Positions 17,946 through 54,923 of a stretch of DNA of 64,000 nucleotides are shown piece after piece; positions within the stretch are counted from its first letter, which is position 1, and each line of letters begins with the position of its first letter. This DNA is from Macrostomum lignano (lineage: Eukaryota), in NCBI GenBank assembly GCA_002269645.1, contig NIVC01000092.1:1-64000 (forward strand), written 5' to 3'. The notes under the pieces are model-generated. The model ran no database searches. It saw only the letters and a list, made by a program, of their open reading frames with translations, and was not told the origin of the DNA. The translations under genes and the position numbers were made by a program.

Positions 17946-19232
<1,287 letters not shown>

Positions 19233-26669: not shown

Positions 26670-27056
26670 TCGTCGGATTCGCGTCACACTGGCATCAGCT
26701 GCGACGGCTGCGGCCAGCGCGCCTTCACCGGGCGACGCTACAAATGCCTTCGCTGTCACGATTTCGACTTGTGCGGCCCCTGCTTTGACACCGCTAATTT
26801 TGGCGCCTCGGAATTTCGGCGAGCGGCGCGCGGCATTCCAGGCGGAGAGCACGAGCCCTCGCATCCGATGCAGTGCGTCCTGAGTCCTCAGATGCTGCGA
26901 ATCTACTACTGCGAGGATTTCAGCGATCCCAGCGGCGGTGGCATTGTTCCCGGGGGTACTGGCGCCATGTCTTTCACCTGTCCATTGTGCGGCCGGCTGG
27001 GTCTGTCCGAGAATGGCCTGGCGGATCACGTTGTGTCCGAGCATGCGGACGATTCC
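26670..27056 (+). CDS. KCMF1: KCMF1 E3 ubiquitin ligase, ZZ-finger/C2H2 exon (start-codon exon not identified)
   Basis: CTGCAG acceptor, then [39 protein letters not shown]...HPMQCVL...[29 protein letters not shown], then a GTGAGT donor (phase 0). Closely matches the KCMF1 N-terminus. Confidence 0.92.
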
Positions 27057-27104
27057 GTGAGTTTTCTGAACTGCATTCTGCTCGAGTTTTTTATTGCGGG
27101 TCAA

Positions 27105-27500
27105 AGATTTGGGATTAGGGATCTAAGATTGGGATTGGGGATCTAAGATTGGGATTAGGGATCTAAGATTGGGATTAGGGATCTAAGATAGGGATTAGGG
27201 ATCCAAGATTGGGATTAGGGATCTAAGATAGGGATTAGGGATCCAAGATTGGGGTTAGGGATCTAAGATTGGGGTTAGGGATCTAAGATTGGGATTAGGG
27301 ATCTAAGATTGGGATTAGGGATCTAATATTTGGATTTTATGGATCCAAGATCGGGATTTTATGGATTTAAGATTGGGATTTTATGGATCTAAGATTGGGG
27401 TTAGGGATCTAAGATTGGTATTATGGATCTTAGATTCGGATTCGGGATCTTAGATTAGGATTAGGGATCTAAGATTGGGATTAGGGATCTAAAATTAGGA
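27105..27500. repeat. Intronic 20-bp G-rich minisatellite containing TTAGGG (partly duplicated at 33329-33620)
   Basis: Unit GGGATTAGGGATCTAAGATT. Confidence 0.95.
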
Positions 27501-27667
27501 CTTCGTGCCCCAACGTCCCCCCCACCCGCCAGGCCGGTCCGGACGTTGTCTGCCCCTTGACTTACTTGACTTAGCTGCAGGGTGGTCCGTAGACACAGCG
27601 GGGAGGCGAGGGTCGCCCATTCCGCTAGCCCCTGAAGGCCCGCAGACAGGCAGAGGCGTGGGGCCGG

Positions 27668-30600
27668 TCAGGGTGGTCGGATCCGTCCTGCAGCGTGATC
27701 TTCCGTGGTGAAGAAACTGGCTCGTCTAGTCGCCCGAAGGAACTGGATGAGCCGTGGGATGCTGTCGGGCTGGCAGACCTCGTCAATGGACGGGTTCGGC
27801 CCGAGGTAGCGTAGCCGGTCTCTGTTAAAGAAGGGGCAGTGACAGACAAAGTGCTGAGCATCTTCATTGTCGCACTCGCAAAAGGGGCAAATTTCGCTCT
27901 CGAGGTCGCCTCGGAGGAAGCAGTGCCTGACGAGGTAGCCATGGCCGGTAAGGGTCATGACAAAGGCTCGAATATCCTTCCGATTCTGGTTCAGAAGGAT
28001 GTTTCTGAGCCTGCGAGACGGGCAAGGAACCGCGGCACGAGATTGCCGGCAGTTTTGGGTGCCCGCCCATCTGTCCCTGTGGAGGGAGTCAGCCCAGTCG
28101 TCGATCTGACGATTGATGACTGTCAAGGGCATAGGGACCAGGGGGGCAGGGCCGAAGAAAGAGCCAGAGCCGCCCCTCTTGGCGAGGGTGTCTGCCAGCT
28201 CGTTCCCCGGAAACTCTGCGTGTCCTGGGATCCACTTCAGCCTGACAGTATTGCTTCTGGTCAGGAGGTTGAGCTGCCGGGCGCAGTCGGCAACTGTCCG
28301 GGAGTTCGTTGTGGTGTGGCAAAGGGCCTGTAAGGCCGCTTGGCTGTCGGAGTGGATGACAATAGTCTTTCCTCTCGTAACCTTGGCGTTCAGCTCTGCA
28401 GCGCAAGAGCTGATGGCAAGGACTTCGTTCTGGAAGACTGTGGAGAGTCTACCAGTGTGCTGGGCATGCGTGGCAATTACGCGGCCGTTAATGATGATGC
28501 AGACCCCAAAGCCGGCGCGACCGTCTTTGATGGATCCGTCCGTGTAGCAATGGACCTCCTGGAAATTCAAGTGGTCATTGGCAGCATCCCTAGAGGGGAT
28601 GGTGACCTTGTAGCGCTGAAAGAGGTTGAGAGTGCGGGGTTCGCCGTCAGATAGGACGTGGATCCCGCCGCTGTCTCTCAAGTCCTTGAGGCAGAGGTCA
28701 GCGTGGGGCAGAAGCTTGCGCTTAGCCATGGCCCTATGGGGCTGGATTCGAATGCCAGCGTCAGCTAGACGGCGGGCAGTCTTAGCCGCTTCCCTGCGGA
28801 CAAAGATGTCCAGCGGAGGAATGTTGAGGAAGGCGTTGAGGCCATCGTAAGGAGCAGACGGAGGGGCGCTCATGATCGTGCGACATGCGCGCCCTTGCGC
28901 TCTCCTGAGAGCCTCTAGACAGGTCTTTATCTGCAGGGCGCTAGCCCAGATCAGGCCGGCTTACGAGATAGCGGGCCTAACCATTGCAGTGTAGATCCAC
29001 CAGAGGCGCTTGGGGGTGAGCCCCCAGGTGGTGCCGACAGCCCTGCGCAATTGCGTGAGGACTGCGAAGGCCTTTTTGGCTTTTGTTTGAACGTGGGGTG
29101 ACCAGTTCAGCCTGTGGTCCAGGGTAATACCCAGACATTTAGTCTGCTTGCAGAAGGGGATTTCCCTTCCGTAAAGCGTGAGCGGCCGAATCTGCCACTT
29201 GGTCCTGCTGGTGAACATGATCGCTGCGGTCTTAGTCTCAGAGAGCCTTAAACCACAGCGGTCCGCCCATTGCTCAGCGGCGTAGATAAAGTTCTGAAGA
29301 AGGTCCCTGAGGGTATCAGGGGACGGACCAGATGCCACCGCGGTGACATCGTCCGCATAACCAACTTTCAGAATGGGGTCAGGCCGAACATCCCGGAGGA
29401 GCTCATCGATGACCATATTCCAGAGAACTGGAGACAGCACCCCACCTTGCGGGCTACCTTTGCAGACGGGGACCGTCCTCTGGTAGCCCAGCAGACTGGC
29501 GGTGGCCGTGCGATGGCTGATCATGTACATGATCCATCTGGTGAGATGTGGGTGCGTTTGCCTCTCACAAAGAGCTCTTCGGAACGCCTCAAAGAGGACG
29601 TTATCGAAGGCGCCAATGATGTCCAGGAAGATCCCCAGAGCAAAGCCATTACCAAGCACGGCCTTCTCGAGTTTATCGACCAGGACGTGTAGCGCGCTTT
29701 CAGTGGAGCGACCCGCCCGAAAAGCGTGCTGGTTCTCGCTGAGAGGTTTGTTCTTCAGCTCAACAGAGAGAAGGCGCCAAAGCACCAGTCTCTCCATCAG
29801 CTTGACCAGGGAGGAGGTCAAGCTGATCGGTCTAAAGGATTTGATAGAATGGTAGTCCGGGCGGCCTGGCTTAGGGATAAAGATCACCTTTGCCTCAATG
29901 CCTCGGTCCATGCCTGTGGGACATAACCAAGCGTGATGCATGCCCGAAGAAGGCTGCAAAGTTTGCGCAGGAAGCCTGGGCATTTAACCGCCTCTCTTAG
30001 GAGGGCCGGTACAATGCCGTCGGGTCCTGGGGCTTTGAAAGGCTTGAAGGAATTTGCCGCTCTCACGATGCGGTCCTCCGTGATGATAGAGGCAGCCAGC
30101 GCGTGACCTCCCTCCGAGTGATCCGGAGTGGTCTGGTTAGCTGGCTCGTTTGGGAAAAACGCAGTGAGCATTACATCAAGCGTTTCCCCTGGGTTGTCCG
30201 TGGACGTACCGTCGGTGCGTTTGACCGAGGAGAGCTTAGACATTTTGTCCAGCGTGAGCGCTTTCACAACTCTGGAGGTGGGGCGTGAGCCCTCTAGCTC
30301 CTCACAGTATTGTCGCCATTTTTGAGCCTTTGCATTCCTAACCTGCCTTTTAAACTCATGGATTGCTTCATGATAGGCGGTTTGGTCTGCAGGGCTCTTA
30401 GTTTTAGTTGCTCTGCGGTGGAGTCTCTTAGCCCTGCGACGGAGGTTGCCGAGCTCGGGATTCCACCACGGCGCCGATTTTTTCCCTTTATAGGCTTTTA
30501 AAGGGCAGGACGCCTCAAAGGCGGCGGTTAGCGTCTCTGTCAAAACAGTCGCGCACTCATCCGCCTCTCGGCACGACGTGATCGTGGATGGTTGGCCAGG

Positions 30601-31382
30601 AGACCGATGGAATTCCTTCAGGGCGAGCCCGAAGGTTTCCCAATCAGTATTTCTGGCGTTCCGTCTCCACGTAACACGAGTTGCGCTACGCGCGGCCATT
30701 AGGTTGAAGGAGATGAACTTGTGATCCGAGAGTGAGGACACTGGAAGCACCCGCCACGCCCCAATACTCTGGTAGAGTCTGGGCGTTGCGAGCGTAGCGT
30801 CGATCACCTCCGACCACCGTCCGTTGTCAAAGGTAGGGGTGGACCCAGAGTTGCAGAACTCGAGGGTCGTAGAGGCAACGTAGGCTAGGAGGTCTTCGCC
30901 TCTCTGATTAATGCCAGTGCTGCCCCAGTGAGTGTGGTGGGCGTTGATGTCGCCGGCAACCATGAGCTCGTAGTTTTTGGCAGAGCAGAGCTCTACCAGC
31001 GTAGCGAGGGCTCTGGGGACGACCGCAGCATCGCCTGGTAGGTAAACCGAGGCAATGAGGGTGGTCTTCCCAGGAAGAAGGTCCTCGGATTGGATGACGC
31101 AGATGTCCCTGTTGGACAGGTCCGATCTGAGCCACGCACTGAGCGTTTTGCTCGCAAAGATGCAAGCTCTGGGAGGCTGGTTGGCCTCGCGAGGGTAAGT
31201 ATAAAAACAATTGTAGCCAGCAGGGGCGTTTTGAGGCTTACCCTGAGAGTCCAGGGTTCCTGGACGAGGATGAGCCCCGGCTTGTCGAGCTCGGCGTAAC
31301 GCATAAGGTTGACCGAGGCTGCGACGCAGTGCTGCAGATTAATCTGCAGGCAATGGATTCCCTGGTTGCTGATCATTATCAC
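27668..31382 (-). pseudogene. LINE ORF2 (AP endonuclease, reverse transcriptase, RNase H, CCHC finger), disrupted
   Basis: Motifs LQINLQH..LVQEPW, AGDINAHH..WGS, TPTF, SDHKFI, APGPDG, FRPISL, KGSPQGGVLSPVLW, YADD, YTDGS...QNEVLAI..SDSQAAL..WIPGH..GNELAD, LTGH..CPFC..EDAQHFVCHC. Frameshifts at ~31245 and ~29900 and an in-frame TAA at 28961-28963. Confidence 0.93.
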
Positions 31383-32842
31383 GCAGTTGGGGAATCGTTG
31401 AGCAGGTCATCCTCCTTTTCAGTGGTGGGTGACCCGCAGACCTCCATGGGAGTTTCAGCGTCCTCAGCAGTTAGGGTGGCTGTGGAGTCCTCCGCGGACG
31501 TGAGCCCAGCGTGGACGTTACCGTCGCCTCCCCTGCGTGCTTCGGTGCTGTCACTGCCCGTCCCCTCTGCCTCGTCGGTCAGGTCGATGCGGGTGGCGCC
31601 AGCCTCCTGGTGAGTCACAGACTCGAACCAGTCGGTCGGAGCCTCCCCGCTTAGAGTCTGGCCTTCTGGCTGTTGGGGTGGAGCGCGAGAAGCGCGGGCC
31701 CGCTCACGATGCGCACGAAGGTTCTTGGCCTGGTCCAGCGCGCGCTGGATCAGGCCGGACCTCCGGGTGCTCCTGGCGGGTCTGCGATTGCGACTTCCGG
31801 TTTCAGCAGCGCGAACTGCCTTACCGGGCATAGGATCGGCCGTTTGCCTCGGCTTCTTTGCCGGAGGAGCCTGGGCCCCAGTTCCGGTTTCGGAAGCCTT
31901 GGCATTCTTGGCTTCATCAGCTTTCCGCTCCTCGCAACGGAGGATGGTCAGCTGAGTCAGACCAATATGAATTGTGGACTTAGGCGGCAAGCGTTTAGCC
32001 CAGTCATCAGAGAGCCCTAGGATCACCGTAGCCCCCTTCTCCTTGCGAGAAGTGGCGTGGTGTAGGAGCCCGTTGACCTCAAGGTCGGGGTGCAGCTTTA
32101 GCAATATTTGCCTAAGCTGATCTCCGGACTTAATGGCACTGCCGGCCGGGATCCAGACGCGAAAGCGCTGGGTCTTCTGTCGTTCGCCCTCGCTGGCGAA
32201 GACGAGCTTGCCGAGCTTCTTGGGCCAGTTCAGCTTTGGCAGAAGCTCGCGTAGATTGCGGCTGCTCTCCTCCGAGCTGCACCAGATGAAGATGCAGCCG
32301 TCGGTCTTGGCAGACTTGACCACGCTCACAGGGCGGCCCGCCAGGAGCTGGTCGATGAGCGCAGCATCGATGGTGCGCCAGGCACTGTCGAGCTCGTCGG
32401 CCGTGAGGTCCTGCTCTTCCCCGAAGACGATGACCGCCGGTTGGAGCTTGACCTTTGAGGCGTAGTTGGTGGCGGCGGTTCCCGAAGGCCCGGCCGCGCT
32501 TGTAGCAGGTATACTGGGTGGCTCACCAGCGGGGGTTGTATCCTGGGGGGCAGGGGTTGCTGTGGTTCCTTTCGGCCCAACAGCAGCCTCGCCCTCCCTA
32601 GGTTCCCCCTCCGCCGGTGGCCGGCCCGCAGTACCCCGTAGTCGCCGTCGCCGCTCGTTGCGGCGTTGGTTGCGGGTGCGTCGGGCTTCAGCGGAGGGCC
32701 CGGTTGCGCGTGCGGGCATGTCACCGGCCGAGCCGGCGGCAAGCCCATCTGCCCCCGGTGCGGCGGCGCTGGTGCCAGAGTCACCGGCCGGAGTTGCCGG
32801 GGCCCCGGCTTCAGCGGGGTTGAAAGAGGCGGATGACGCCAT
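31379..32842 (-). CDS. LINE ORF1 (gag-like, probable DUF4780-like core, no CCHC knuckle seen)
   Basis: Open ~487 aa from ATG 32842, immediately upstream of ORF2, with a basic RRNQRRNERRRR stretch. The central GCIFIWC...FRVWIP...GATVILGL segment resembles R1/LOA ORF1 cores. Confidence 0.8.
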   Translation of the reverse strand: MASSASFNPAEAGAPATPAGDSGTSAAAPGADGLAAGSAGDMPARATGPSAEARRTRNQRRNERRRRLRGTAGRPPAEGEPREGEAAVGPKGTTATPAPQDTTPAGEPPSIPATSAAGPSGTAATNYASKVKLQPAVIVFGEEQDLTADELDSAWRTIDAALIDQLLAGRPVSVVKSAKTDGCIFIWCSSEESSRNLRELLPKLNWPKKLGKLVFASEGERQKTQRFRVWIPAGSAIKSGDQLRQILLKLHPDLEVNGLLHHATSRKEKGATVILGLSDDWAKRLPPKSTIHIGLTQLTILRCEERKADEAKNAKASETGTGAQAPPAKKPRQTADPMPGKAVRAAETGSRNRRPARSTRRSGLIQRALDQAKNLRAHRERARASRAPPQQPEGQTLSGEAPTDWFESVTHQEAGATRIDLTDEAEGTGSDSTEARRGGDGNVHAGLTSAEDSTATLTAEDAETPMEVCGSPTTEKEDDLLNDSPTA

Positions 32843-33062
32843 AACTGAAAGCGGGAAGGAGTGAGCTGAGTCACAAAAGAAAGAGGAAAGAAGAAAAAGA
32901 AAAGGACCGCTAGCGACCGGACAACCCCCGGCCTTCCAGCCCATCGGCACGGTCAAACACCTTAGGCATTAGGGGGTACGTTAAGCAGTACCACGGCCTG
33001 CAGGCTGGCAAGCCAGACCCGCATACCCAAGTTCGGCCGAAGCCACTGGATGGGTCGCCAGC

Positions 33063-33311
33063 GTCGGAGCCCAGTCTGTCCAGCAGCCCTAGGGTCTGCC
33101 TTGAACACACGCGGGGACGAGTACCCTGGGTCGACTTGTGAAACAGCGTGGGGGGGGGTCTGCGGCTGCCAGCGGCAAATAGCGGGTGCAGACCTCCCTC
33201 TCCAGCCTTGACCTGCTGAAGATAGGGGCAGGCGTGAAGCATCGCAGACCGTAGCCCATAGGCCTGGTCTGTCTCATACTTCACTGGCGTGCTGAATACA
33301 CCTTCGCGTGC
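33063..33311 (-). ncRNA. Predicted HDV-like self-cleaving ribozyme at the LINE 5' terminus
   Basis: P1 GCACGCG (33311-33305) pairs with CGCGUGU (33113-33107), opening with a G1-U wobble. P3 GGG/CCC encloses L3 UACUCGU. P1.1 is A-U plus C-G. A P4 hairpin is followed by J4/2 CAGA (C at 33078). P2 is gucg..ccca(g)/(c)uggg..cgac. J1/2 is ~170 nt. Confidence 0.75.
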
Positions 33312-33652
33312 CGTTGTCTGCCCAGTCTAGGGATTAGGGATCCAAGATTGGGGTTAGGGATCTAAGATTGGGGTTAGGGATCTAAGATTGGGATTAGGGA
33401 TCTAAGATTGGGATTAGGGATCTAAGATTGGGATTAGGGATCTAATATTTGGATTTTATGGATCCAAGATCGGGATTTTATGGATTTAAGATTGGGATTT
33501 TATGGATCTAAGATTGGGGTTAGGGATCTAAGATTGGTATTATGGATCTTAGATTCGGATTCGGGATCTTAGATTAGGATTAGGGATCTAAGATTGGGAT
33601 TAGGGATCTAAAATTAGGACTTCGTGCCCCAACGTCCCCCCCCACCCGCCAG

Positions 33653-34189
33653 GCCGGTCCGGACGTTGTCTGCCCAGTCTGCGCCTGCGTGCCCAGCAGC
33701 GGCCCCTGCCCGCGCATGCGCAGCCTTGTGCGCCACCTGCTGCGCGACCACGCCGCCGACGCCGCCGCAACAGCCGCAGCGGCAGCCGCTTCAGGCGGCG
33801 CCTCCTCCGCTGCCGCCGCCGCCGCAGCCGCCGCGGCGAACCGACGGCGCCACCCCGCCGGCGACCCGATCACGGAGCTGCTGGCTCAGCTGGGCGGCAG
33901 GGCGCCGTCCAATTTGGAGTTGCAGCTGCGCAGGTCGCGCCTTCTCGAACGGCATCCGGTGATATCCGGCAGTTCCACGGCGACGGCTACGGCGACGGCT
34001 ACGTCTACAGCGGCTGCGGGTGCTGCTGCATCGGCGCCGGCTGCAGAGACAGCGCAGGCCGTGGCTAGTAAAAAACAGCAGCAGCAGCAGCAGTCACATA
34101 GCCAGCGGTATCCGCTGCTGCACTCTCTGGCTACTGCTGATGCATCGGCCGCAGCCAACTCCGACGCTGCTGCTGCCCTTGATGCCCAG
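33653..34189 (+). CDS. KCMF1: KCMF1 exon (second zinc-finger region, Ala-rich linker)
   Basis: CCGCCAG acceptor, then AGPDVVCPVCACVP...RHLLRDH...DPITELLAQLGG (cf. KCMF1 VICPIC, DPIAELLSQLSG), then a CAG|GTAATT donor. Phase 0, in frame with the previous exon. Confidence 0.88.
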
Positions 34190-34249: not shown

Positions 34250-34600
34250 GTATTCTGAAATGGGGTATTGGCTATTGGGATTCTGAAGTGGTATTAAGAA
34301 TGAGATTCAGAAGTGGAGTATTAGGATTCTGAAGTGGGGTATTGGGATTCTGAAATGGGGTATTGGGATTCTGAAATGGGGTATTGGGATTCTGAAGTGG
34401 GGTATTGGGATTCTGAAATGGGGTATTGGGATTCTGAAATGGGGTATTGGGATTCTGAAGTGGGGTATTGGGATTCTGAAATGGGGTATTGGGATTCTGA
34501 AATGGGGTATTGAGATTCAGAAGTGAGGTATTGGGATTCTAAAGTGGGGTATTGGGAATCTGAAGGGGGTATTGGGATTCAGAAGCGTGGTATTGGGATT
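34250..34600. repeat. Intronic 21-bp G-rich minisatellite
   Basis: Unit GGGGTATTGGGATTCTGAAAT. Confidence 0.93.
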
Positions 34601-34734
34601 CAAAAGTAGGGTGTTGGGATCATATATTGTGGTTTGCAATTGCGACTCGGGTTAAAAATCTGGGGTGAATTATTAAATGACCTGACAAAGCCTGCAGTAT
34701 AGATAAGATGACCTTTCTTTTCCCGATTCACCAG

Positions 34735-34806
34735 GTCGCCAGTCGCCTTGCAACTCAGCTGACCAACGGATTGCTGCAGCTTGGCGACTTTGATGACGCC
34801 GCGTGA
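34735..34806 (+). CDS. KCMF1: Probable terminal coding exon of KCMF1
   Basis: TTTTCCCGATTCACCAG acceptor, then VASRLATQLTNGLLQLGDFDDAA*, phase-compatible. Homology is weak. Confidence 0.55.
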   Translation, partial: VASRLATQLTNGLLQLGDFDDAA

Positions 34807-35029: not shown

Positions 35030-35560
35030 TTATGACCCTCTCAATCTGCTCATTGTTCAGTAGCAGCATGACCCTCTCAATCTGCTCATTGTTCAGTAGC
35101 AGCATGACCCTCTCAATCTGCTCATTGTTCAGTAGCAGCATGACCCTCTCAATCTGCTCATTGTTCAGTAGCAGCATGACCCTCTCAATCTGCTCATTGT
35201 TCAGTAGCAGCATGACCCTCTCAATCTGCTCATTGTTCAGTAGCAGCATGACCCTCTCAATCTGCTCATTGTTCAGTAGCAGCATGACCCTCTCAATCTG
35301 CTCATTGTTCAGTAGCAGTATAACCCTCTCAATCTGCTCATTGTTCAGTAGCAGCATGACCCTCTCAATCTGCTCATTGTTCAGTAGCAGCATGACCCTC
35401 TTAATCTGCTCATTGTTCAGTAGCAGCATGACCCCCTCAATCTGCTCATTGTGACATGGGCATGACCCCTAATCTGCTCATTCTGACATGAGCGTGACCC
35501 CTAATCTGCTCATTCTGACATGAGCGTGACCCCTAATCTGCTCATTCTGACATGAGCATG
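35030..35560. repeat. 36-bp minisatellite with a shorter degenerate tail
   Basis: Unit ATGACCCTCTCAATCTGCTCATTGTTCAGTAGCAGC. Confidence 0.95.
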
Positions 35561-36039
35561 ACCACAAGTTCCCATAATCTGGTCATGCACAACCCCAGTC
35601 TGTCCTATTTTAAAACTATTATTAACAATTTGATATCACGGCGCTTTCACACTCAAGTTAGCCAGCGTTACGTGTGCTCTGATTGCTAATATTTACCTTC
35701 AGCCCTTATGGAGTACCTTGCTCTGCTCATATAAATCAATTTAGTGAAGTTCGGAAATTCTGTTAGACAAAGCAGTGTGTAAATTATTATAATATTTATT
35801 CTAGAGATGTGTTAGTCTTTCTGCGACCCCATTATCTCTGATTCTATCTATAGAATCAACTTCAAGATAATTGTATCCTAACTGGCATTGCTGTCAATAA
35901 TAAATTATTATTGACATTTTTATAGCTATTATTTAATATACTGCTTAATTCGTTATTTCTCTATACTCTGCAGTTTTTTACATGTTATTCAAGCTGTCAA
36001 TTAAAGAGGAATCTTACTTTGTGTATGCACCCTTACATC

Positions 36040-36815
36040 TAGATCCTTATTTTAAGTAATAATCACCCATATATCTAGATCCTTCATTTTTGAGAAGTCA
36101 CCCTTATATCTAGTTCCTCATTTTGAGTAGGCACCCTTATATCTAGATCCTCATTTTGAGTAGGCACCCTTATATCTAGATCCTCATTTTGAGTAGGCAC
36201 CCTTATATCTAGTTCCTCATTTTGAGTAGGCACCCTTATATCTAGTTCCTCATTTTGAGTAGGCACCCTTATATCTAGTTCCTCATTTTGAGTAGGCACC
36301 CTTATATCTAGTTCCTCATTTTGAGTAGGCACCCTTATATCTAGATCCTCATTTTGAGTAGGCACCCTTATATCTAGATCCTCATTTTGAGTAGGCACCC
36401 TTATATCTAGTTCCTCATTTTGAGTAGGCACCCTTATATCTAGATCCTCATTTTGAGTAGGCACCCTTATATCTAGATCCTCATTTTGAGTAGGCACTCA
36501 TATATCTAGATCCTTATTTTGAGTAGGCACCCTTATATCTAGTTCCTCATTTTGAGTAGGCACCCTTATATCTAGATCCTCATTTTGAGTAGGCACTCAT
36601 ATATCTAGATCCTTATTTTGAGTAGGCACCCTTATATCTAGTTCCTCATTTTGAGTAGGCACCCTTATATCTAGATCCTCATTTTGAGCATATCTAGATC
36701 CTCATTTTGAGTAGGCACTCATATATCTAGATCCTCATTTTGAGCATATCTAGATCCTCATTTTGAGTAGGTACCCTTAAATCTAGATCCTCATTTTGAG
36801 TAGGCACCCTTATAT
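36040..36815. repeat. 33-bp minisatellite
   Basis: Unit TATATCTAGATCCTCATTTTGAGTAGGCACCCT. Confidence 0.95.
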
Positions 36816-37369
36816 CTTCATCCTATTTTTTGAGTAAGCACGATCCTTATTCTTCTTAGCTTAAAAATAGGAATTATTTAATTATTGTTTTCGACTCGCG
36901 CTAAAGGCTGTACCGCTTTCACCTCGCTAACATTGATTGAACGCCAAAACTGTGTTTTGAAATGTATTATACCCCGATTCATAAAGCCAAGCTACACTAA
37001 AACTTGTCTGTTTAATTTGTCTTTTGCCTGTCCGTAGATCAATTATTAATAGAGTTGTACTTGCACATGCATGTACTTTAAGTTCGTAGTTGCTTTGTTA
37101 ATTGCTGTGTTAGCTTGTGTGCTTCAGATTCTCATTGGTTTCCTTCTGTATTCAGCATTACGGTGCATTGAAGATAAAAAATTAACGAAAATAATTTTAA
37201 CATATTTGATTCAGTTAATTGTGCTAATTTCAACAGTAAATTGATTCTATTCATTTTTTATTAAAAATCTTTTGTTATAATGTGTTCTTTTTACAAACAT
37301 AGCGTTAGCCAGCTTTAAGATTCGTTTGAATTATAGCCAGTGCCGTACGCACAATTTTATAAGTTTGAG

Positions 37370-47338: not shown

Positions 47339-48653
47339 CTACTTGTTAAATCCGGAATTTGTCTGCCCACCACTGCCGCTAGCCGTCACTGCAGCATCGT
47401 AGCTCGGAGGCGCGGCAGTGTACTGCGGGTACTGCGAATACTGCGGGGCCTGTGGGTACTGCGGCTGCGTGGGGTACGGCTGAGACCCCGCTGGGTACTG
47501 CGGCGCTGTGGGGTAGCTGCCGGCAGGCGGCGGGACCGTCACTTGACCGGCGCTGACCACGACGGAACTGGCGCCCTGGGCCCGTCGGCGCGCCCGACTG
47601 CGCATGCCGGAGTAAATGCCGACCACGATGAGGCCGAACAAGAACAGGCCGCCGCCGACTAACGCGTAGACCCAAATGTTACTGCTGGTTGAATAGTAAG
47701 GATTGTAGGTGTTTGGCACGGTGTAAAACGTACTCGTGCCGCCAGGAGGTGCGGAGCAGGCGAATTTGTTTCGATCGCTGCAGTCATCCATAAAAATTGC
47801 GTAATACGAGCTTTTGTCATTGAAAGTCCCACAGCGTTCGTACGAATAGCAGCTGGACGAAGAGCCACCTGAGTAGCAGCTGATTTCCGACGTCCTAAAG
47901 CACGGGTGGTTTTGGAGTCAAACGCACGAGAAATAGTATGCAAATGTAAGATAACAGAAAAAAGGGATCTAGACATTACCAGAATTGTCGCCTTCCACTC
48001 AGCCAGTAGTGCGAGAATCGAGCCGAGCGGTCGGTCAGTCCGATCCAGGTGTAGTAGCGCCTCAGGCTGGTCGGAAGCATACGCATGAACGAGCCAATGT
48101 TGCTCTGGTACGCAAGCGGAACATGTAGGAGATTCGAGCGCATGCTGTTGCAAGCTCGCTGAGCGTCAAGGTAGTTCCGGCTGCTTCCAATGCTGTCAGT
48201 ACCGAAGCAGGTGCCGCTGATGTACGTCCAGCCGGGAATGCAGCCGTTGAGGTCCATCGCTCGAACTCGGACTGTGACGCCCTCGCTGTTCGACTGGTCT
48301 CCGGTCGCATCGAAGCGGACCTTCAGCGACTTCGATGGCGTCAAGATGTTGTGCTGGTAGTCCGGGATGCTGGAGCCGCTAAACAGCACCTCATCACCGG
48401 AGCTGATGGTGAACACTGCCGAGCTGACCTTGAACGACTTGACTTCGACGAAGAATGCTCGGTTAGGCGACTCCGCATTGAACTCGCAGCTCATTCCGGA
48501 GGAGTAGCTGGCCTCGTTTTTGCGTCTCGTAGTCAGGTAGAAATCCGTCAGTGACGCGCTGACAATGGTAGGAGAGTCCGGGCTGCAGTAGAACTGCTGC
48601 TGGGCCGTGGCCGCCGCGACGAGGCAGGCCAGAAGGACCAGCAGTTTGTGCAT
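47339..48653 (-). CDS. Type I membrane CUB-like + C-type lectin receptor, copy 1 (exons 48653-47980, 47894-47339)
   Basis: Signal peptide MHKLLVLLACLVAAATA; CUB-like YSSGMSCEF..LKVRF..G; CTLD CIPGW..CF..AQRAC..WIGL..W..C..DDC..FAC; TM helix; Pro/Tyr/Gln tail with PPSY. Phase-2 GT-AG intron. Confidence 0.85.
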
Positions 48654-50369
48654 GCCGACTCTGTGTTGCATGTTTCTGTTTCCTATGGGTTTGCGTTTTG
48701 CCTCACTATCGGATTGAGTCTCATTTGCTAGCCGTTTCGACTGGCAATATATTGCTTCGAAAGACGAGTTTGCCGAGAGAGCTTTGATAAGATATGCCAA
48801 GTTATATTTAGTTTCTGGCTATGTACATCTGCGCTGACGAATGACATCGGCTGAAATTTAATGCTTGACAATTTGCTGAGCCACTTTCGATAATAATAAT
48901 CACCGCACTTGATGATAAAATCGGAGTGGATAAAAACAAAAGGTGGACGCACTTGCAGTAAATTTTTGTTGCAGAGACCAACGTGCGTTGTCTTATCACA
49001 ATCAGTTTGCGTGGATAGGGTGCTGCTTGGAAACCTGCATTGCCAAGTACCGACCTAAGCTGCATGGCCATTAGTTGAAGAAAAAGAGAAATGTCTCTGC
49101 AGCAGTTATTTTTCACTTCACCGACCTATAAGTGACAAACAGTGCTATTCTATACTACAACGATTCTGAGCCTACAGGAAAGTACGAGTAGTTTTAGTCT
49201 TCTTGCTTTCCCCTGACACAGCAAACGGATACTTACGCAGGAGGCAGTCACTCGCACTGGGTGTACGTACAATTAATGCGACCCTGACATCTGTAGACCT
49301 TAGCCACTTACACCTCAGCGTGGCCTTGGAAATAAAACGGTCTTGCGTCACGTGCGTGAATCGCTCGATGTGCTCTGTAGAGAAATGTAACAAAAACTTT
49401 CCATCTTGAGTTAAAAATGAAAGACAGTAAGAGAAGCACATGGCTCAAACCGGTAGATTTGTGTCATTAAACTAAGGGGTTGAGTGCAAAGTAAGAATTA
49501 GAAGGGGTGGAGAGTGCGACTGACGAGAGAGGCGAGATTCAAGAGCCAATCAGAAGGCAGCGAGGGAGAGAGATAAGAAAACAAGATTGAACCAGAGGGG
49601 ACAGAAAACAGAGTGCAGATGAACTAAGAAATGACTAAGAAAGTCGATCAGGACATGCCGATTCATCCAATTTCAGTCCCAATAGATTCGACTGCGCATG
49701 AAATCGAGCCCCGGGGGGGGGGACCTTGAAGTCAGACTCGGACGTTTTATAAGCTCCACAAGTCCATCAAGGACTACTAAGCCCTTCTATTCACAATATT
49801 TCGTATTCAGCTGTCCCTGTAGCCACTCATTATGCTGCGCTGTATTTGTTCAGTGACTTTAGTCAAAATTTTTAGTATATGGATTTGTGCATTCTTACAT
49901 GAATAAAAAGAAGTGTGTACAATTTAAGCAAATTTGCCCATCAATTAGGAAGACAGAAAACGCATTTCACTTACATTTCGAACACAGGTTACAGTTGTTG
50001 CAGATCTCATGAACATAGGCTTTTATAGTCTTTAATCTCAATCGAGAAAAGCTATCTGAATTTTATGCACAGCATGTTAATTGCAGTGATCCGCTAGTTT
50101 GGTGTTAGGCGTCGCACTATTGTCAGCAGCTTCCTTCGCCCTCGCCCTCGCCCTGGGTTGCTGTCTGCCGCTGGGCAGCCTCCCTCCCCTTTTGCTGCCT
50201 GTTCTCTGGCACCCCCTCTTCTCTGCGCTCTTGCTTGCTTTCTTACTTGCTTTCTCTCTCTGAGCAAGTCACCTGACAAGTCTTGTTTTCTCGAAGTCCT
50301 AAAGTGCAGTAAACATGTTTACTGCACTCGTTGGCCCGTGTTTACGGGAGGAATCACGTGCTTCGGGGC

Positions 50370-51593: not shown

Positions 51594-51850
51594 GCTCTCG
51601 AAGGCGTATTCAGCATGCCAGTGAATTATGAGACAGACTAGGCCTACGGGCTACGGTCTGTGATGCTTCACATCTGCCCCTCTTTCTTCAGCAGGTAAAG
51701 ATTGGCGGGAGATCTGCACCATCTATTTGCTTCTGGCAACCGCAGACTCCTCCACGCTGTCCCGCAAGTCGGCCCAGGGGTACTCGTCCCCGCGAGTGTT
51801 TAAGGCAGACCCTAGGGCTGAAGGACAGACACTGCTCCCCAATGCTGGTA
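51594..51850 (+). mobile_element. Solo 5'-end (ribozyme) fragment of the same LINE family, degenerate
   Basis: Aligns colinearly with the reverse complement of 33311-33063 (GAAGG.GTATTCAGCA.GCCAGTGAA...GGGTACTCGTCCCCGCG.GTGTT.AAGGCAGACCCTAGGGCTG). No ORF or tail follows. Confidence 0.88.
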
Positions 51851-52279: not shown

Positions 52280-53580
52280 CTACTTATTGAATCCTGCATT
52301 CACCTGGCCGCCACTACCGCTAGCCATCACTGCAGCATCGTAGCTCGGAGGCGCAGCAGTGTACTGCGGGTACTGTGGGGCTTGTGGGTACTGCGGCTGC
52401 GTCGGGTACGGCTGAGACCCCGTCAGGTACTGCGGCGCAGCGGGGTAGCTGCCGGCAGGCGGCGGGACCGTCACTTGACCGGAGCTGACCACGACGGAAC
52501 TGGCGCCCTGGGCCCGTCGGCGCGCCCGACTGCGCATGCCGGAGTAAATGCCGACCACGATGAGACCGCCGACGAACAGCACCGCGATGACGACGCCCCA
52601 GACCCAGGCCCTGCTGCTCTGCAGCACATAATTGTTGGGCACGGTGTAAAACCGACTGGTGCCGCCCGCCGGTGCTGAGCAGGCAAACTTATTCCGGTTG
52701 CTGCAGTTGTTCATGTAGATTGCGTAATACGAGTTCTTGTCCTTGAAAGCGCCGCAGCGTTCGGACGAATAGCAGCTGGACGAAGAGCCACCTGAGTAGC
52801 AGCTGATCTCCGATGTCCTAATAAAGTTACAGGTGGTTCAAAATTCAAACCCACGAAAACAGGATATGCTATGTAAGATAAAAGTAAAAAAAGATCTAGA
52901 CATTACCAGAATTGTCGCCTTCCACTCAGCCAGTAGTGCGAGAATCGAGCCGAGCGGTCGGTCAGTCCGATCCAGGTGTAGTAGCGCCTCAGGCTGGTCG
53001 GAAGCATACGCATGAACGAGCCAATGTTGCTCTGGTACGCAAGCGGAACATGTAGGAGATTCGAGCGCATGCTGTTGCAAGCTCGCTGAGCGTCAAGGTA
53101 GTTCCGGCTGCTTCCAATGCTGTCAGTACCGAAGCAGGTGCCGCTGATGTACGTCCAGCCGGGAATGCAGCCGTTGAGGTCCATTGCTCGAACTCGGACT
53201 GTGACGCCCTCGCTGTTCGACCGGTCTCCGGTCGCATCGAAGCGGACCTTTAGCGACTTCGACGGCGTCAAGATGTTGTGCTGGTAGTCCGGGATGCTGG
53301 AGCCGCTAAACAGCACCTCATCACCGGAGCTGATGGTGAACACTGCCGAGCTGACCTTGAACGACTTGACTTCGACGAAGAATGCTCGGTTAGGCGACTC
53401 CGCATTGAACTCGCAGCTCATTCCGGAGGAGTAGCCGGCCTCGTTCTGGCGTCTCGTGGTCAGGTAGAAGTCCGTCAGTGAAGCGCTGACGGTGGTAGGA
53501 GAGTCCGGGCTGCAGTAGAACTGCTGCTGGGCCGTGGCCGCCGCGACGAGGCATGCCAGAAGGACCAGCAGTTTGTGCAT
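52280..53580 (-). CDS. Type I membrane CUB-like + C-type lectin receptor, copy 2 (exons 53580-52907, 52817-52280)
   Basis: Same architecture and intron position as copy 1. Exon 1 has the identical length (674 nt) and near-identical sequence. Confidence 0.85.
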
Positions 53581-54923
53581 GTTTATTGCGCGCATCGGTT
53601 GTGAGCTTATCGTCCGACTTTGCTTGGGCACGGCGCTGTTTGCGTCGCTCACGGCCAAAGCCTGCGTTTTATATGTCCTTGCCGATAAGATAAGCAAGTT
53701 CTATTTTTTCTAGCATATTATTCAATAATTTTGTGCTTTTGTAGTTGCTAGGTTTATTTAGGCAAACGCACAATTTATCAGTGACTAGTTCGGCTTTGGA
53801 ATAAGTCTACGTTGTCAGGGTTATGAGATCGAGCCGTGTCTGAGCTCACGTGAGGATTGAGCAAGTTGGAGTAGATTGAATATGAGACTCTTCGTGTCGA
53901 AAGAGTCTTTAAGATCACTATACTCGATCCAGATCAGCATTCTGCAGCTCAGCTAGGGGAAGTCCTTAAAATTGAGAATTCGTCCTGTAGCTGTGGGCTG
54001 TACTTTTTGCCCTTTAAATAGCAAATAGGGTTAAAGCATAGTACATACTGTACTGTTCGCACGGCATGCAATAAGTCAATCCCTCGTATGCTAAAAATAG
54101 AGAGAGGCTCATCGATGCAAGCAAGTTAACTGGAAGTCGGCTATAATTTTTTTTTATTTTGTGCTTTCTTCAAAGAAAGGAGATTTCCCATAGACTATTC
54201 GTGACTGACTGGTAATTGAGTAAAATGGGGAACGCACAATTCAAAAGTGTAAGCTCAGGTAGTTGACGTCTTCTGGGCGTTTCTGCTTAATTCGACACAC
54301 TTGGTCACATTTGAACAGACTGACGCTTCAGGTAAGCAGCCGGTGTGTTCTGTCTTTTCTTTAAAAAGCTTATTTATTGCAAAACCAAATTCTATTATAA
54401 AATTCTGTAAAAAATCTTCTAATATTTCTACAGTTATGATTTGAAGCCATCTAATAGCCTGTAGTTCACATGGAGGATGACTAATTAATGATTTTCTCCA
54501 TATCTGGGGTCTCGAAAGTGCGATTAAAGCACCGGCTCTCTGTTTTATGACTTACAGCTTCTTTAACACTGTTTTTCTGTAGCCAAAATTGCGCTTAATA
54601 TCTGCTTTGAAAAGCAACCGGGGTCAGAGCAGCTCTGCGTTCAACGCGTCCAACTCTCGCACCCCATGACCCATGGTTCCATTCCGTGTGCAAAAATTGG
54701 CCCAGGGTGTTGTCCTGCGATTCACACCTATGACCTATGAGGGAAAACTAGCGAGGCACAGAGAGTGTACATGCCTAACGATCAGGAGTCAGCGGAATGG
54801 GCAGAATTGCATGCCCCAGCGTTGTATGTGAGACGATATCGCCGAAGACTTGGTGTTGGAGTGTCCGCAACCCTCCTGCAGCTATTTTCTTTCAAAACCA
54901 TCTTTAAAACCCACAGTGTTGCT

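Follow-up and report, generated by a model that had tools for sequence, protein, structure and literature searches.

The first 64 kb of scaffold NIVC01000092.1 in Mlig_3_7, the published genome assembly of the flatworm Macrostomum lignano, were analysed as consensus sequence (this stretch of 64,000 nucleotides is called the window below). They contain a KCMF1-like gene in which the start of exon 2 occurs twice, the two copies being separated by a full-length long interspersed nuclear element (LINE) in antisense orientation. The upstream copy of the exon start is cut off by the LINE after 23 nt, whereas the downstream one continues into an intact exon. Below we describe the gene, the duplication and the LINE, and weigh how the three may have come together.

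The KCMF1-like gene and its duplicated exon start

The gene is annotated in GenBank as BOX15_Mlig016194g1 and lies on the plus strand. Exon 1 (26685-27056) encodes the ZZ finger and the first half of the Di19-type zinc finger, ending with ...EHADDS, and is followed by the donor GTGAGT at 27057. The intact exon 2 (33653-34189) starts with AGPDVVCPVCAC and ends with ...LDAQ and the donor GTAATT, and the last exon of the annotated product occupies 34735-34806. The translation of these three segments matches the annotated product (PAA91248.1, P0274) exactly, so that the annotation agrees with the sequence and the genome-guided transcript assembly of the annotators must join 27056 to 33653. Pfam recognised an N-terminal ZZ domain (PF00569) followed by a Di19-type C2H2 domain (zf-Di19, PF05605) in this product; its top PDB matches were KCMF1 chains (E of about 1e-24), and the exons are 97% identical to another Macrostomum lignano protein, in whose cluster PAA91248.1 is the second member. 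The record of the scaffold and the window agree at 100% identity over 16685-44806. By its domain content, the predicted product resembles KCMF1, an E3 ubiquitin ligase.

The intron downstream of exon 1 carries a 20-bp minisatellite on the plus strand (27104-27500, unit AAGATTGGGATTAGGGATCT, about 19.5 copies according to Tandem Repeats Finder). Copy A of the duplicated segment (326 bp, 27230-27555, plus strand) was delimited by alignment and translation, and comprises the tail of this minisatellite, a decoy 3' splice site and 23 nt from the start of exon 2 (27533-27555). The decoy acceptor reads CGCCAG/G at 27532/27533, with its AG at 27531-27532. The last 11 bp of copy A, GTTGTCTGCCC (27545-27555, or 12 bp including the C at 27544), form the left copy of a short target-site duplication (TSD) that sits within the VVCP codons of the KCMF1-like gene. 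Beyond the LINE, the right copy of GTTGTCTGCCC (33314-33324, plus strand) is followed by AGTC(T), which brings this short segment to 33314-33328; these five bases, AGTCT, are those that come next in the uninterrupted exon. At 33328/33329, the sequence then returns to minisatellite position 27230 (AGGGATTAGGG...). This junction is non-homologous (AGTCT/AGGGATT, with 1 nt of microhomology, a T), and the sequence across it is CTGCCCAGTCTAGGGATTAGGGATCC. Copy B (347 bp, 33329-33675, plus strand) provides the working 3' splice site, with its AG at 33651-33652 and the acceptor at 33652/33653, 6.1 kb downstream of the decoy site, and continues into the intact exon 2.

A preliminary description of the window had proposed this order, namely the acceptor and exon start, the antisense LINE, the TSD with AGTCT, and a second flank copy leading into the full exon. 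It had also placed an 11-bp TSD in the VVCP codons and a jump back into the minisatellite five bases past it. We recovered all of these elements. Its near-identical flanks of about 350 bp were likewise confirmed as a duplication, but their description had to be corrected: the copies measure 326 bp (A) and 347 bp (B) and align with 0 substitutions, copy B differing only by one additional 20-bp minisatellite unit and by a run of eight C instead of the seven in copy A. Identity over 326 bp of a non-coding repeat effectively eliminates a chance origin.

The annotated splice from 27056 to 33653 places the decoy site, the LINE and the minisatellite of copy B inside a single intron of 6.6 kb. The annotated exons thus bear out the earlier suggestion that the LINE is effectively intronic behind a decoy acceptor at about 27532. 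This annotation agrees with a predicted removal of the LINE by splicing but is no proof of it, since reads from a 98%-identical paralogue could back the same junction. Use of the decoy acceptor would give a product whose predicted sequence reads AGPDVVCP-LTYLT-stop.

The minisatellite (27104-27500; 33330-33619) has a telomere-like TTAGGG in its unit, and its GGG runs make 22 overlapping four-G-tract patterns, suggesting that the intronic array could be fragile and form G-quadruplexes. On its minus strand, a motif count found CCC(A/T)ATCT once per unit.

A paralogous locus provides a view of the empty site. This locus (L001) lies on NIVC01001115.1, contains the gene BOX15_Mlig031412g1 and can be aligned colinearly with the window (identity about 88-93%). 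A single acceptor and a single exon with an unbroken GTTGTCTGCCCAGTCTGCGCC are present, and alignment of the colinear locus recovered neither the LINE nor the duplication there. Both thus arose after the two gene copies separated. The coding sequences of the paralogues differ by 10 synonymous and 7 non-synonymous changes, corresponding to a synonymous divergence (dS) of 0.040, a non-synonymous divergence (dN) of 0.010 and a dN/dS of 0.24, and both reading frames are intact. The gene in the window has, for instance, Pro where the paralogue has Ala in EHE(P/A)SHP. We considered L001 as the donor of copy B and rejected it, as its minisatellite and poly-C region differ from those of copy B and there are point differences in addition. 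About 4.5 kb of L001 (15328-19817) are missing from the window at 37216-37218, and probably represent another mobile-element insertion that differs between the two copies. The next intron of the KCMF1-like gene and the region downstream contain further minisatellites with units of 21, 36 and 33 bp (34304-34620, 35032-35563 and 36018-36841, respectively), whose copy numbers are unlike those in L001.

The LINE and its lesions

The LINE occupies 27556-33313 on the minus strand (5,758 bp), with its 5' end at 33313, and is full-length. Its 3' end consists of two copies of TAAGTCAAG and carries no poly-A; inverted repeats were looked for at the element and none were found, and the short repeat of 11-12 bp is flush with both of its ends. 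The first open reading frame, ORF1 (32968-31382, minus strand), spans 529 codons from stop to stop. It obtained no match in Pfam, and the only match in a protein search was a metagenomic protein with 58% identity. ORF2 (about 31400-27671, minus strand) was reconstructed from Pfam matches and a frame map, and encodes an apurinic/apyrimidinic (AP)-type endonuclease, a reverse transcriptase, an RNase H and a C-terminal Cys/His motif. The N-terminal endonuclease matched PF14529 (E=1e-16) and PF03372, and its motif INLQHC...LVQEPW could be aligned to relatives. The reverse transcriptase matched PF00078 (E=1e-32) and had 210 homologues at E≤1e-20, the best of them 53-69% identical, and the RNase H located downstream of it matched PF00075 (E=9e-14). 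Intact relatives range from 1,200 to 1,240 aa, those with 54% identity having a length of about 1,235 aa. These domains point to a non-long-terminal-repeat retrotransposon with an AP-type endonuclease and RNase H, putatively of the I/R1/LOA-like group, the pointers to a clade being limited to source names such as "R1" on distant matches of 37-40% identity.

The preliminary description had counted three lesions in ORF2, which can now be specified as two frameshifts and one nonsense codon. Lesion 1 (31242-31247, minus strand) shifts the frame directly behind the endonuclease motif LVQEPWTL and fits a 1-nt deletion, as judged from the frame change in tblastn and from comparison with P0124. Lesion 2 (29897-29904, minus strand) is an 8-nt imperfect tandem duplication, GAGGCATT before GAGGCAAA, located between WTEA and KVIFIPKPG; all homologues change frame there, at LINE nt 3415/3418. 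Lesion 3 (28961-28963, minus strand) is an in-frame TAA in place of the Tyr or Phe of relatives (RPAIS-stop-AGLIW, compared with RPAVSFAGFIW or RPAITYACFIW). Long-read errors were considered as the source of the lesions and rejected for two of the three, as neither an 8-nt duplication nor a TAY-to-TAA substitution is a homopolymer indel. Lesions 2 and 3 thus indicate that this copy of the LINE is truly defective. Set beside the 326-bp flanks without a single substitution, this suggests one of two histories: the LINE was defective by the time it inserted, or it is much older than the duplication.

Traces of other copies of the family were few. An exact look-up of the RNase H reading frame for other family copies returned no match. 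A search of the full library found stretches 97% identical to the LINE at the protein level in a gene model of 1,495 aa (P0125), which derive from another copy of the family. This model is evidently a chimeric prediction through repeats, combining pieces of the LINE family with the C-terminus of a second LINE and a leucine-rich-repeat protein. It skips the region of lesion 1, and the hint of a shared lesion was judged too indirect and was not used. Within the window, an isolated fragment of 240 bp (51599-51838, plus strand) is 84% identical to the 5' untranslated end of the LINE only. There was no LINE coding sequence beside it, and no other copy of the family elsewhere in the window. The fragment starts within 7 nt of the same point as the LINE, which indicates that the LINE copy is full-length or nearly so. 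LINEs are normally truncated at their 5' side, and a solo 5' end is unusual. The fragment is bracketed by a direct repeat of 1.3 kb (47339-48654 and 52280-53581, 90% identity, about 5 kb apart), which may be a local gene or segment duplication.

Possible origins of the arrangement

We favor, tentatively and with less than even confidence, the interpretation that the structure is real and arose in one compound event coupled to retrotransposition; the layout of the locus, the empty ancestral site in the paralogue, the annotated splicing and the ORF2 lesions are observed, and the single-event origin and the order of the strand breaks are what we infer. The endonuclease of the LINE would have nicked the plus strand at CTGCCC^AGTCT within exon 2, and the nicked end would have primed reverse transcription of a full-length, already defective RNA copy. 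The productive join would not have used an opposite-strand break about 11 bp away but instead one located about 330 bp upstream in the G-rich minisatellite, and fill-in of this long stagger would have produced a second copy of the minisatellite tail, of the acceptor and of 23 nt from the exon start. A short templated copy, made when the end of the complementary DNA annealed across the nick and re-annealed distally, with 1 nt of microhomology at each annealing step, could then account for the 16 nt found at the 5' junction of the LINE, GTTGTCTGCCCAGTCT. Although it had struck an exon, the LINE would thereby have ended up within an intron, preceded by a decoy acceptor, and splicing of the mRNA would run from 27056 to 33653.

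Several observations are in line with such a coupled event. It explains directly why the duplication junction lies just 5 bp from the first-strand nick. With not one substitution over 326 bp, the duplication would at most be of the age of a very recent insertion. The joint lacks homology apart from 1 nt, as is typical of end joining or template jumps and not of homologous exchange, and the paralogue is free of both the LINE and the duplication. As a weak lead, the minus strand reads CCCT^ATCT at the edge of the duplication, similar to the CCC^AGTCT of the first nick; with CCC(A/T)ATCT present every 20 bp, such a boundary would however match by chance in about 15% of cases. Other points also weigh against a coupled origin. 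A flush repeat of 11-12 bp with the correct five target bases behind it is precisely the expectation for an ordinary insertion with a short stagger, whereas a long stagger only permits a short flush repeat and needs the addition of a templated filler. In L1 assays, full-length inserts had duplications of 10-17 bp, and very long ones accompanied truncated inserts (PMC2912911). The LINE must moreover have been defective already at insertion, and a single insertion of this LINE family is at hand from which to judge its duplication length and nick motif.

A bolder form of this interpretation holds that one and the same event took the LINE into a coding exon and undid the resulting damage, the second-strand break about 330 bp upstream and the ensuing fill-in having duplicated the acceptor and the start of the exon. 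We consider it doubtful, somewhat more so than the coupled event as such. The distant break would have been placed either by the endonuclease or by a fragile telomere-like minisatellite carrying about 19 near-copies of the nick motif. If this were general for the LINE family, introns containing minisatellites of this kind would buffer nearby exons from LINEs, and would give rise to decoy splice sites and duplicated exon starts.

The closest competitor to the coupled event is a history in which the duplication came first, and we rank the coupled event only slightly above it, the two being about equally likely; taken by itself, this competing history is possible but again well short of probable. 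A tandem duplication of 347 bp (27230-27555 plus AGTCT) would have created a spare, non-functional exon boundary, and the LINE would later have entered the upstream copy in the conventional manner, with a TSD of 11-12 bp and 5 bp from the joint, so that the gene was never disrupted. Standard mechanisms then predict the flush short repeat, the full-length LINE, the correct five bases and the simple 1-nt joint, and every step is neutral, without a harmful intermediate. The genome is also rich in tandem and duplicated sequence, tandem repeats making up 15% of it and duplicated blocks 180-312 Mb (PMC5730564). Attention was drawn to the case by a LINE in exon-like sequence, so that its closeness to the joint (within an exon piece of 28 nt) is partly a product of the way it came to notice. 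On the other side, the 5-bp spacing, which the coupled event accounts for, is left without a reason. Two recent events would be needed within the same 350 bp or so, both younger than one substitution per 326 bp, and the requirement for a LINE that was defective on arrival applies here as well.

That requirement disappears if the LINE inserted first and the acceptor and exon start were re-supplied later to a knocked-out exon, as the preliminary description had suggested with a repair from an uninserted allele, through recombination or template switching; an intrachromosomal switch that copied the left flank and returned via the 11-12 bp repeat would be another source. An old LINE needs no special account of its three lesions and a recent flank copy explains the identity of A and B, while the target-site repeat would serve as homology for the return switch and place the junction nearby. 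The intact coding sequence, with the dN/dS relative to the paralogue given above, is also in keeping with a rescue. Nonetheless, such a history passes through a knocked-out intermediate and requires a rare multi-switch or non-homologous exchange, whereas the two preceding routes avoid that intermediate; the intact paralogue takes away most of the selective pressure, leaving only weak selection for a rescue. An empty allele identical over 326 bp would still be required, in conflict with an old LINE, and the other known copy, L001, is excluded as donor by its minisatellite and point differences. A later repair is thus neither required nor favoured, and we regard it as the least probable of the histories considered.

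Only a little less improbable, and still unlikely, is an assembly artefact, in which the true locus would be a simple insertion or an empty site and the second copy would have been added during assembly of a genome with three subgenomes. Mlig_3_7 was built with Canu 1.4 from noisy PacBio continuous long reads, polished by Pilon with Illumina and RNA-seq data, and scaffolded with SSPACE (PMC5730564). The three subgenomes of M. lignano diverge by about 1.4-2.4% in single nucleotide polymorphisms (SNPs), and 36% of the assembly length is in scaffolds chimeric between subgenomes (PMC10733133). Copies A and B moreover differ solely by repeat-unit and homopolymer indels, which are error-prone classes. 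Against an artefact, the joint AGTCT/AGGGATT, with its overlap of 1 nt, occurs in neither an inserted nor an empty haplotype, while overlap assembly, k-mer polishing and subgenome chimerism switch inside shared sequence and not at joints of this kind. The merge of inserted and empty haplotypes that had been offered as an alternative is accordingly a poor fit, a simple merge being unlikely given the non-homologous junction. Nor would a random chimeric read be expected to link two equally oriented sites of one locus that are separated by 347 bp. Ns are absent from the region, and a donor from another subgenome predicts about 5-8 SNPs per 326 bp where 0 were observed. The locus also lends itself to a cheap check, by PCR and read mapping, of the local quality of Mlig_3_7.

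Repeats are also present in other parts of the window. Its beginning, which is the start of the scaffold, is occupied by a 237-bp satellite (374-7569, about 30 copies, 98% identity), followed by long stretches of simple repeats, namely (ATAG)n (9909-10903), a minisatellite with about 96 copies of a 32-bp unit (11679-14735) and (ATGG)n (17946-19179).

Comparison with known systems

LINE insertions with a local target duplication that can include exon sequence have already been described, and the locus is a natural flatworm instance of this phenomenon and not a new system. TSDs of more than 100 bp have been documented for L1 insertions, with the remark that exons can be duplicated in this way (PMC5223499), and small tandem duplications at L1 junctions have been interpreted as large TSDs (bioRxiv 10.1101/2024.12.14.628481). 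As in the long-TSD insertions of L1 in HeLa cells and in cells deficient in nucleotide excision repair, direct copies of hundreds of target bases flank the LINE in the window, an arrangement that the literature attributes to a distant second-strand break. There are several differences from these L1 cases. In the window, the 5' end of the LINE and the long repeat are separated by 16 nt of target DNA from across the first nick, so that a short duplication is nested in a long one; the LINE is a full-length element of another LINE group, with RNase H and without a poly-A tail; and it is a germline copy in a flatworm, whereas the L1 cases come from cell culture. The long repeat abuts the 3' end of the LINE (27555/27556), but at the 5' end 15-16 nt (33314-33328) intervene before copy B. 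The arrangement thus falls outside the strict definition of a long TSD, in which the repeat abuts both ends.

Unusually long target duplications are also known from non-mammalian LINEs, namely R9 of bdelloid rotifers, with duplications of 126 bp, and Dualen of Chlamydomonas, with longer ones (PMC9977147). Long duplications are regular in those families, whereas a single insertion is known here and its inner repeat is of ordinary length. An ordinary intronic LINE within a small tandem duplication would present the same end state, with a LINE that is spliced out, a local direct repeat and a microhomology joint. The locus differs from it in that the target is derived from an exon and lies 5 bp from the duplication joint, and in that the upstream copy still has its entire 3' splice site.

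Templated insertions at end-joining or template-switch junctions, whether of the polymerase theta type or from replication, typically consist of a short copy of break-adjacent sequence with microhomologies of 1 nt. The 16 nt at the 5' junction of the LINE may be comparable, although here the enzyme cannot be assigned from sequence alone. If the structure is real, it would be a clean natural example, from a germline genome, of an exon that was interrupted by a LINE and is preserved through the target duplication accompanying the insertion, an outcome so far mostly raised as a possibility from work on L1 in cell culture. The decoy 3' splice site, complete and located ahead of the functional one, would at the same time offer a natural test of splice-site choice in flatworms.

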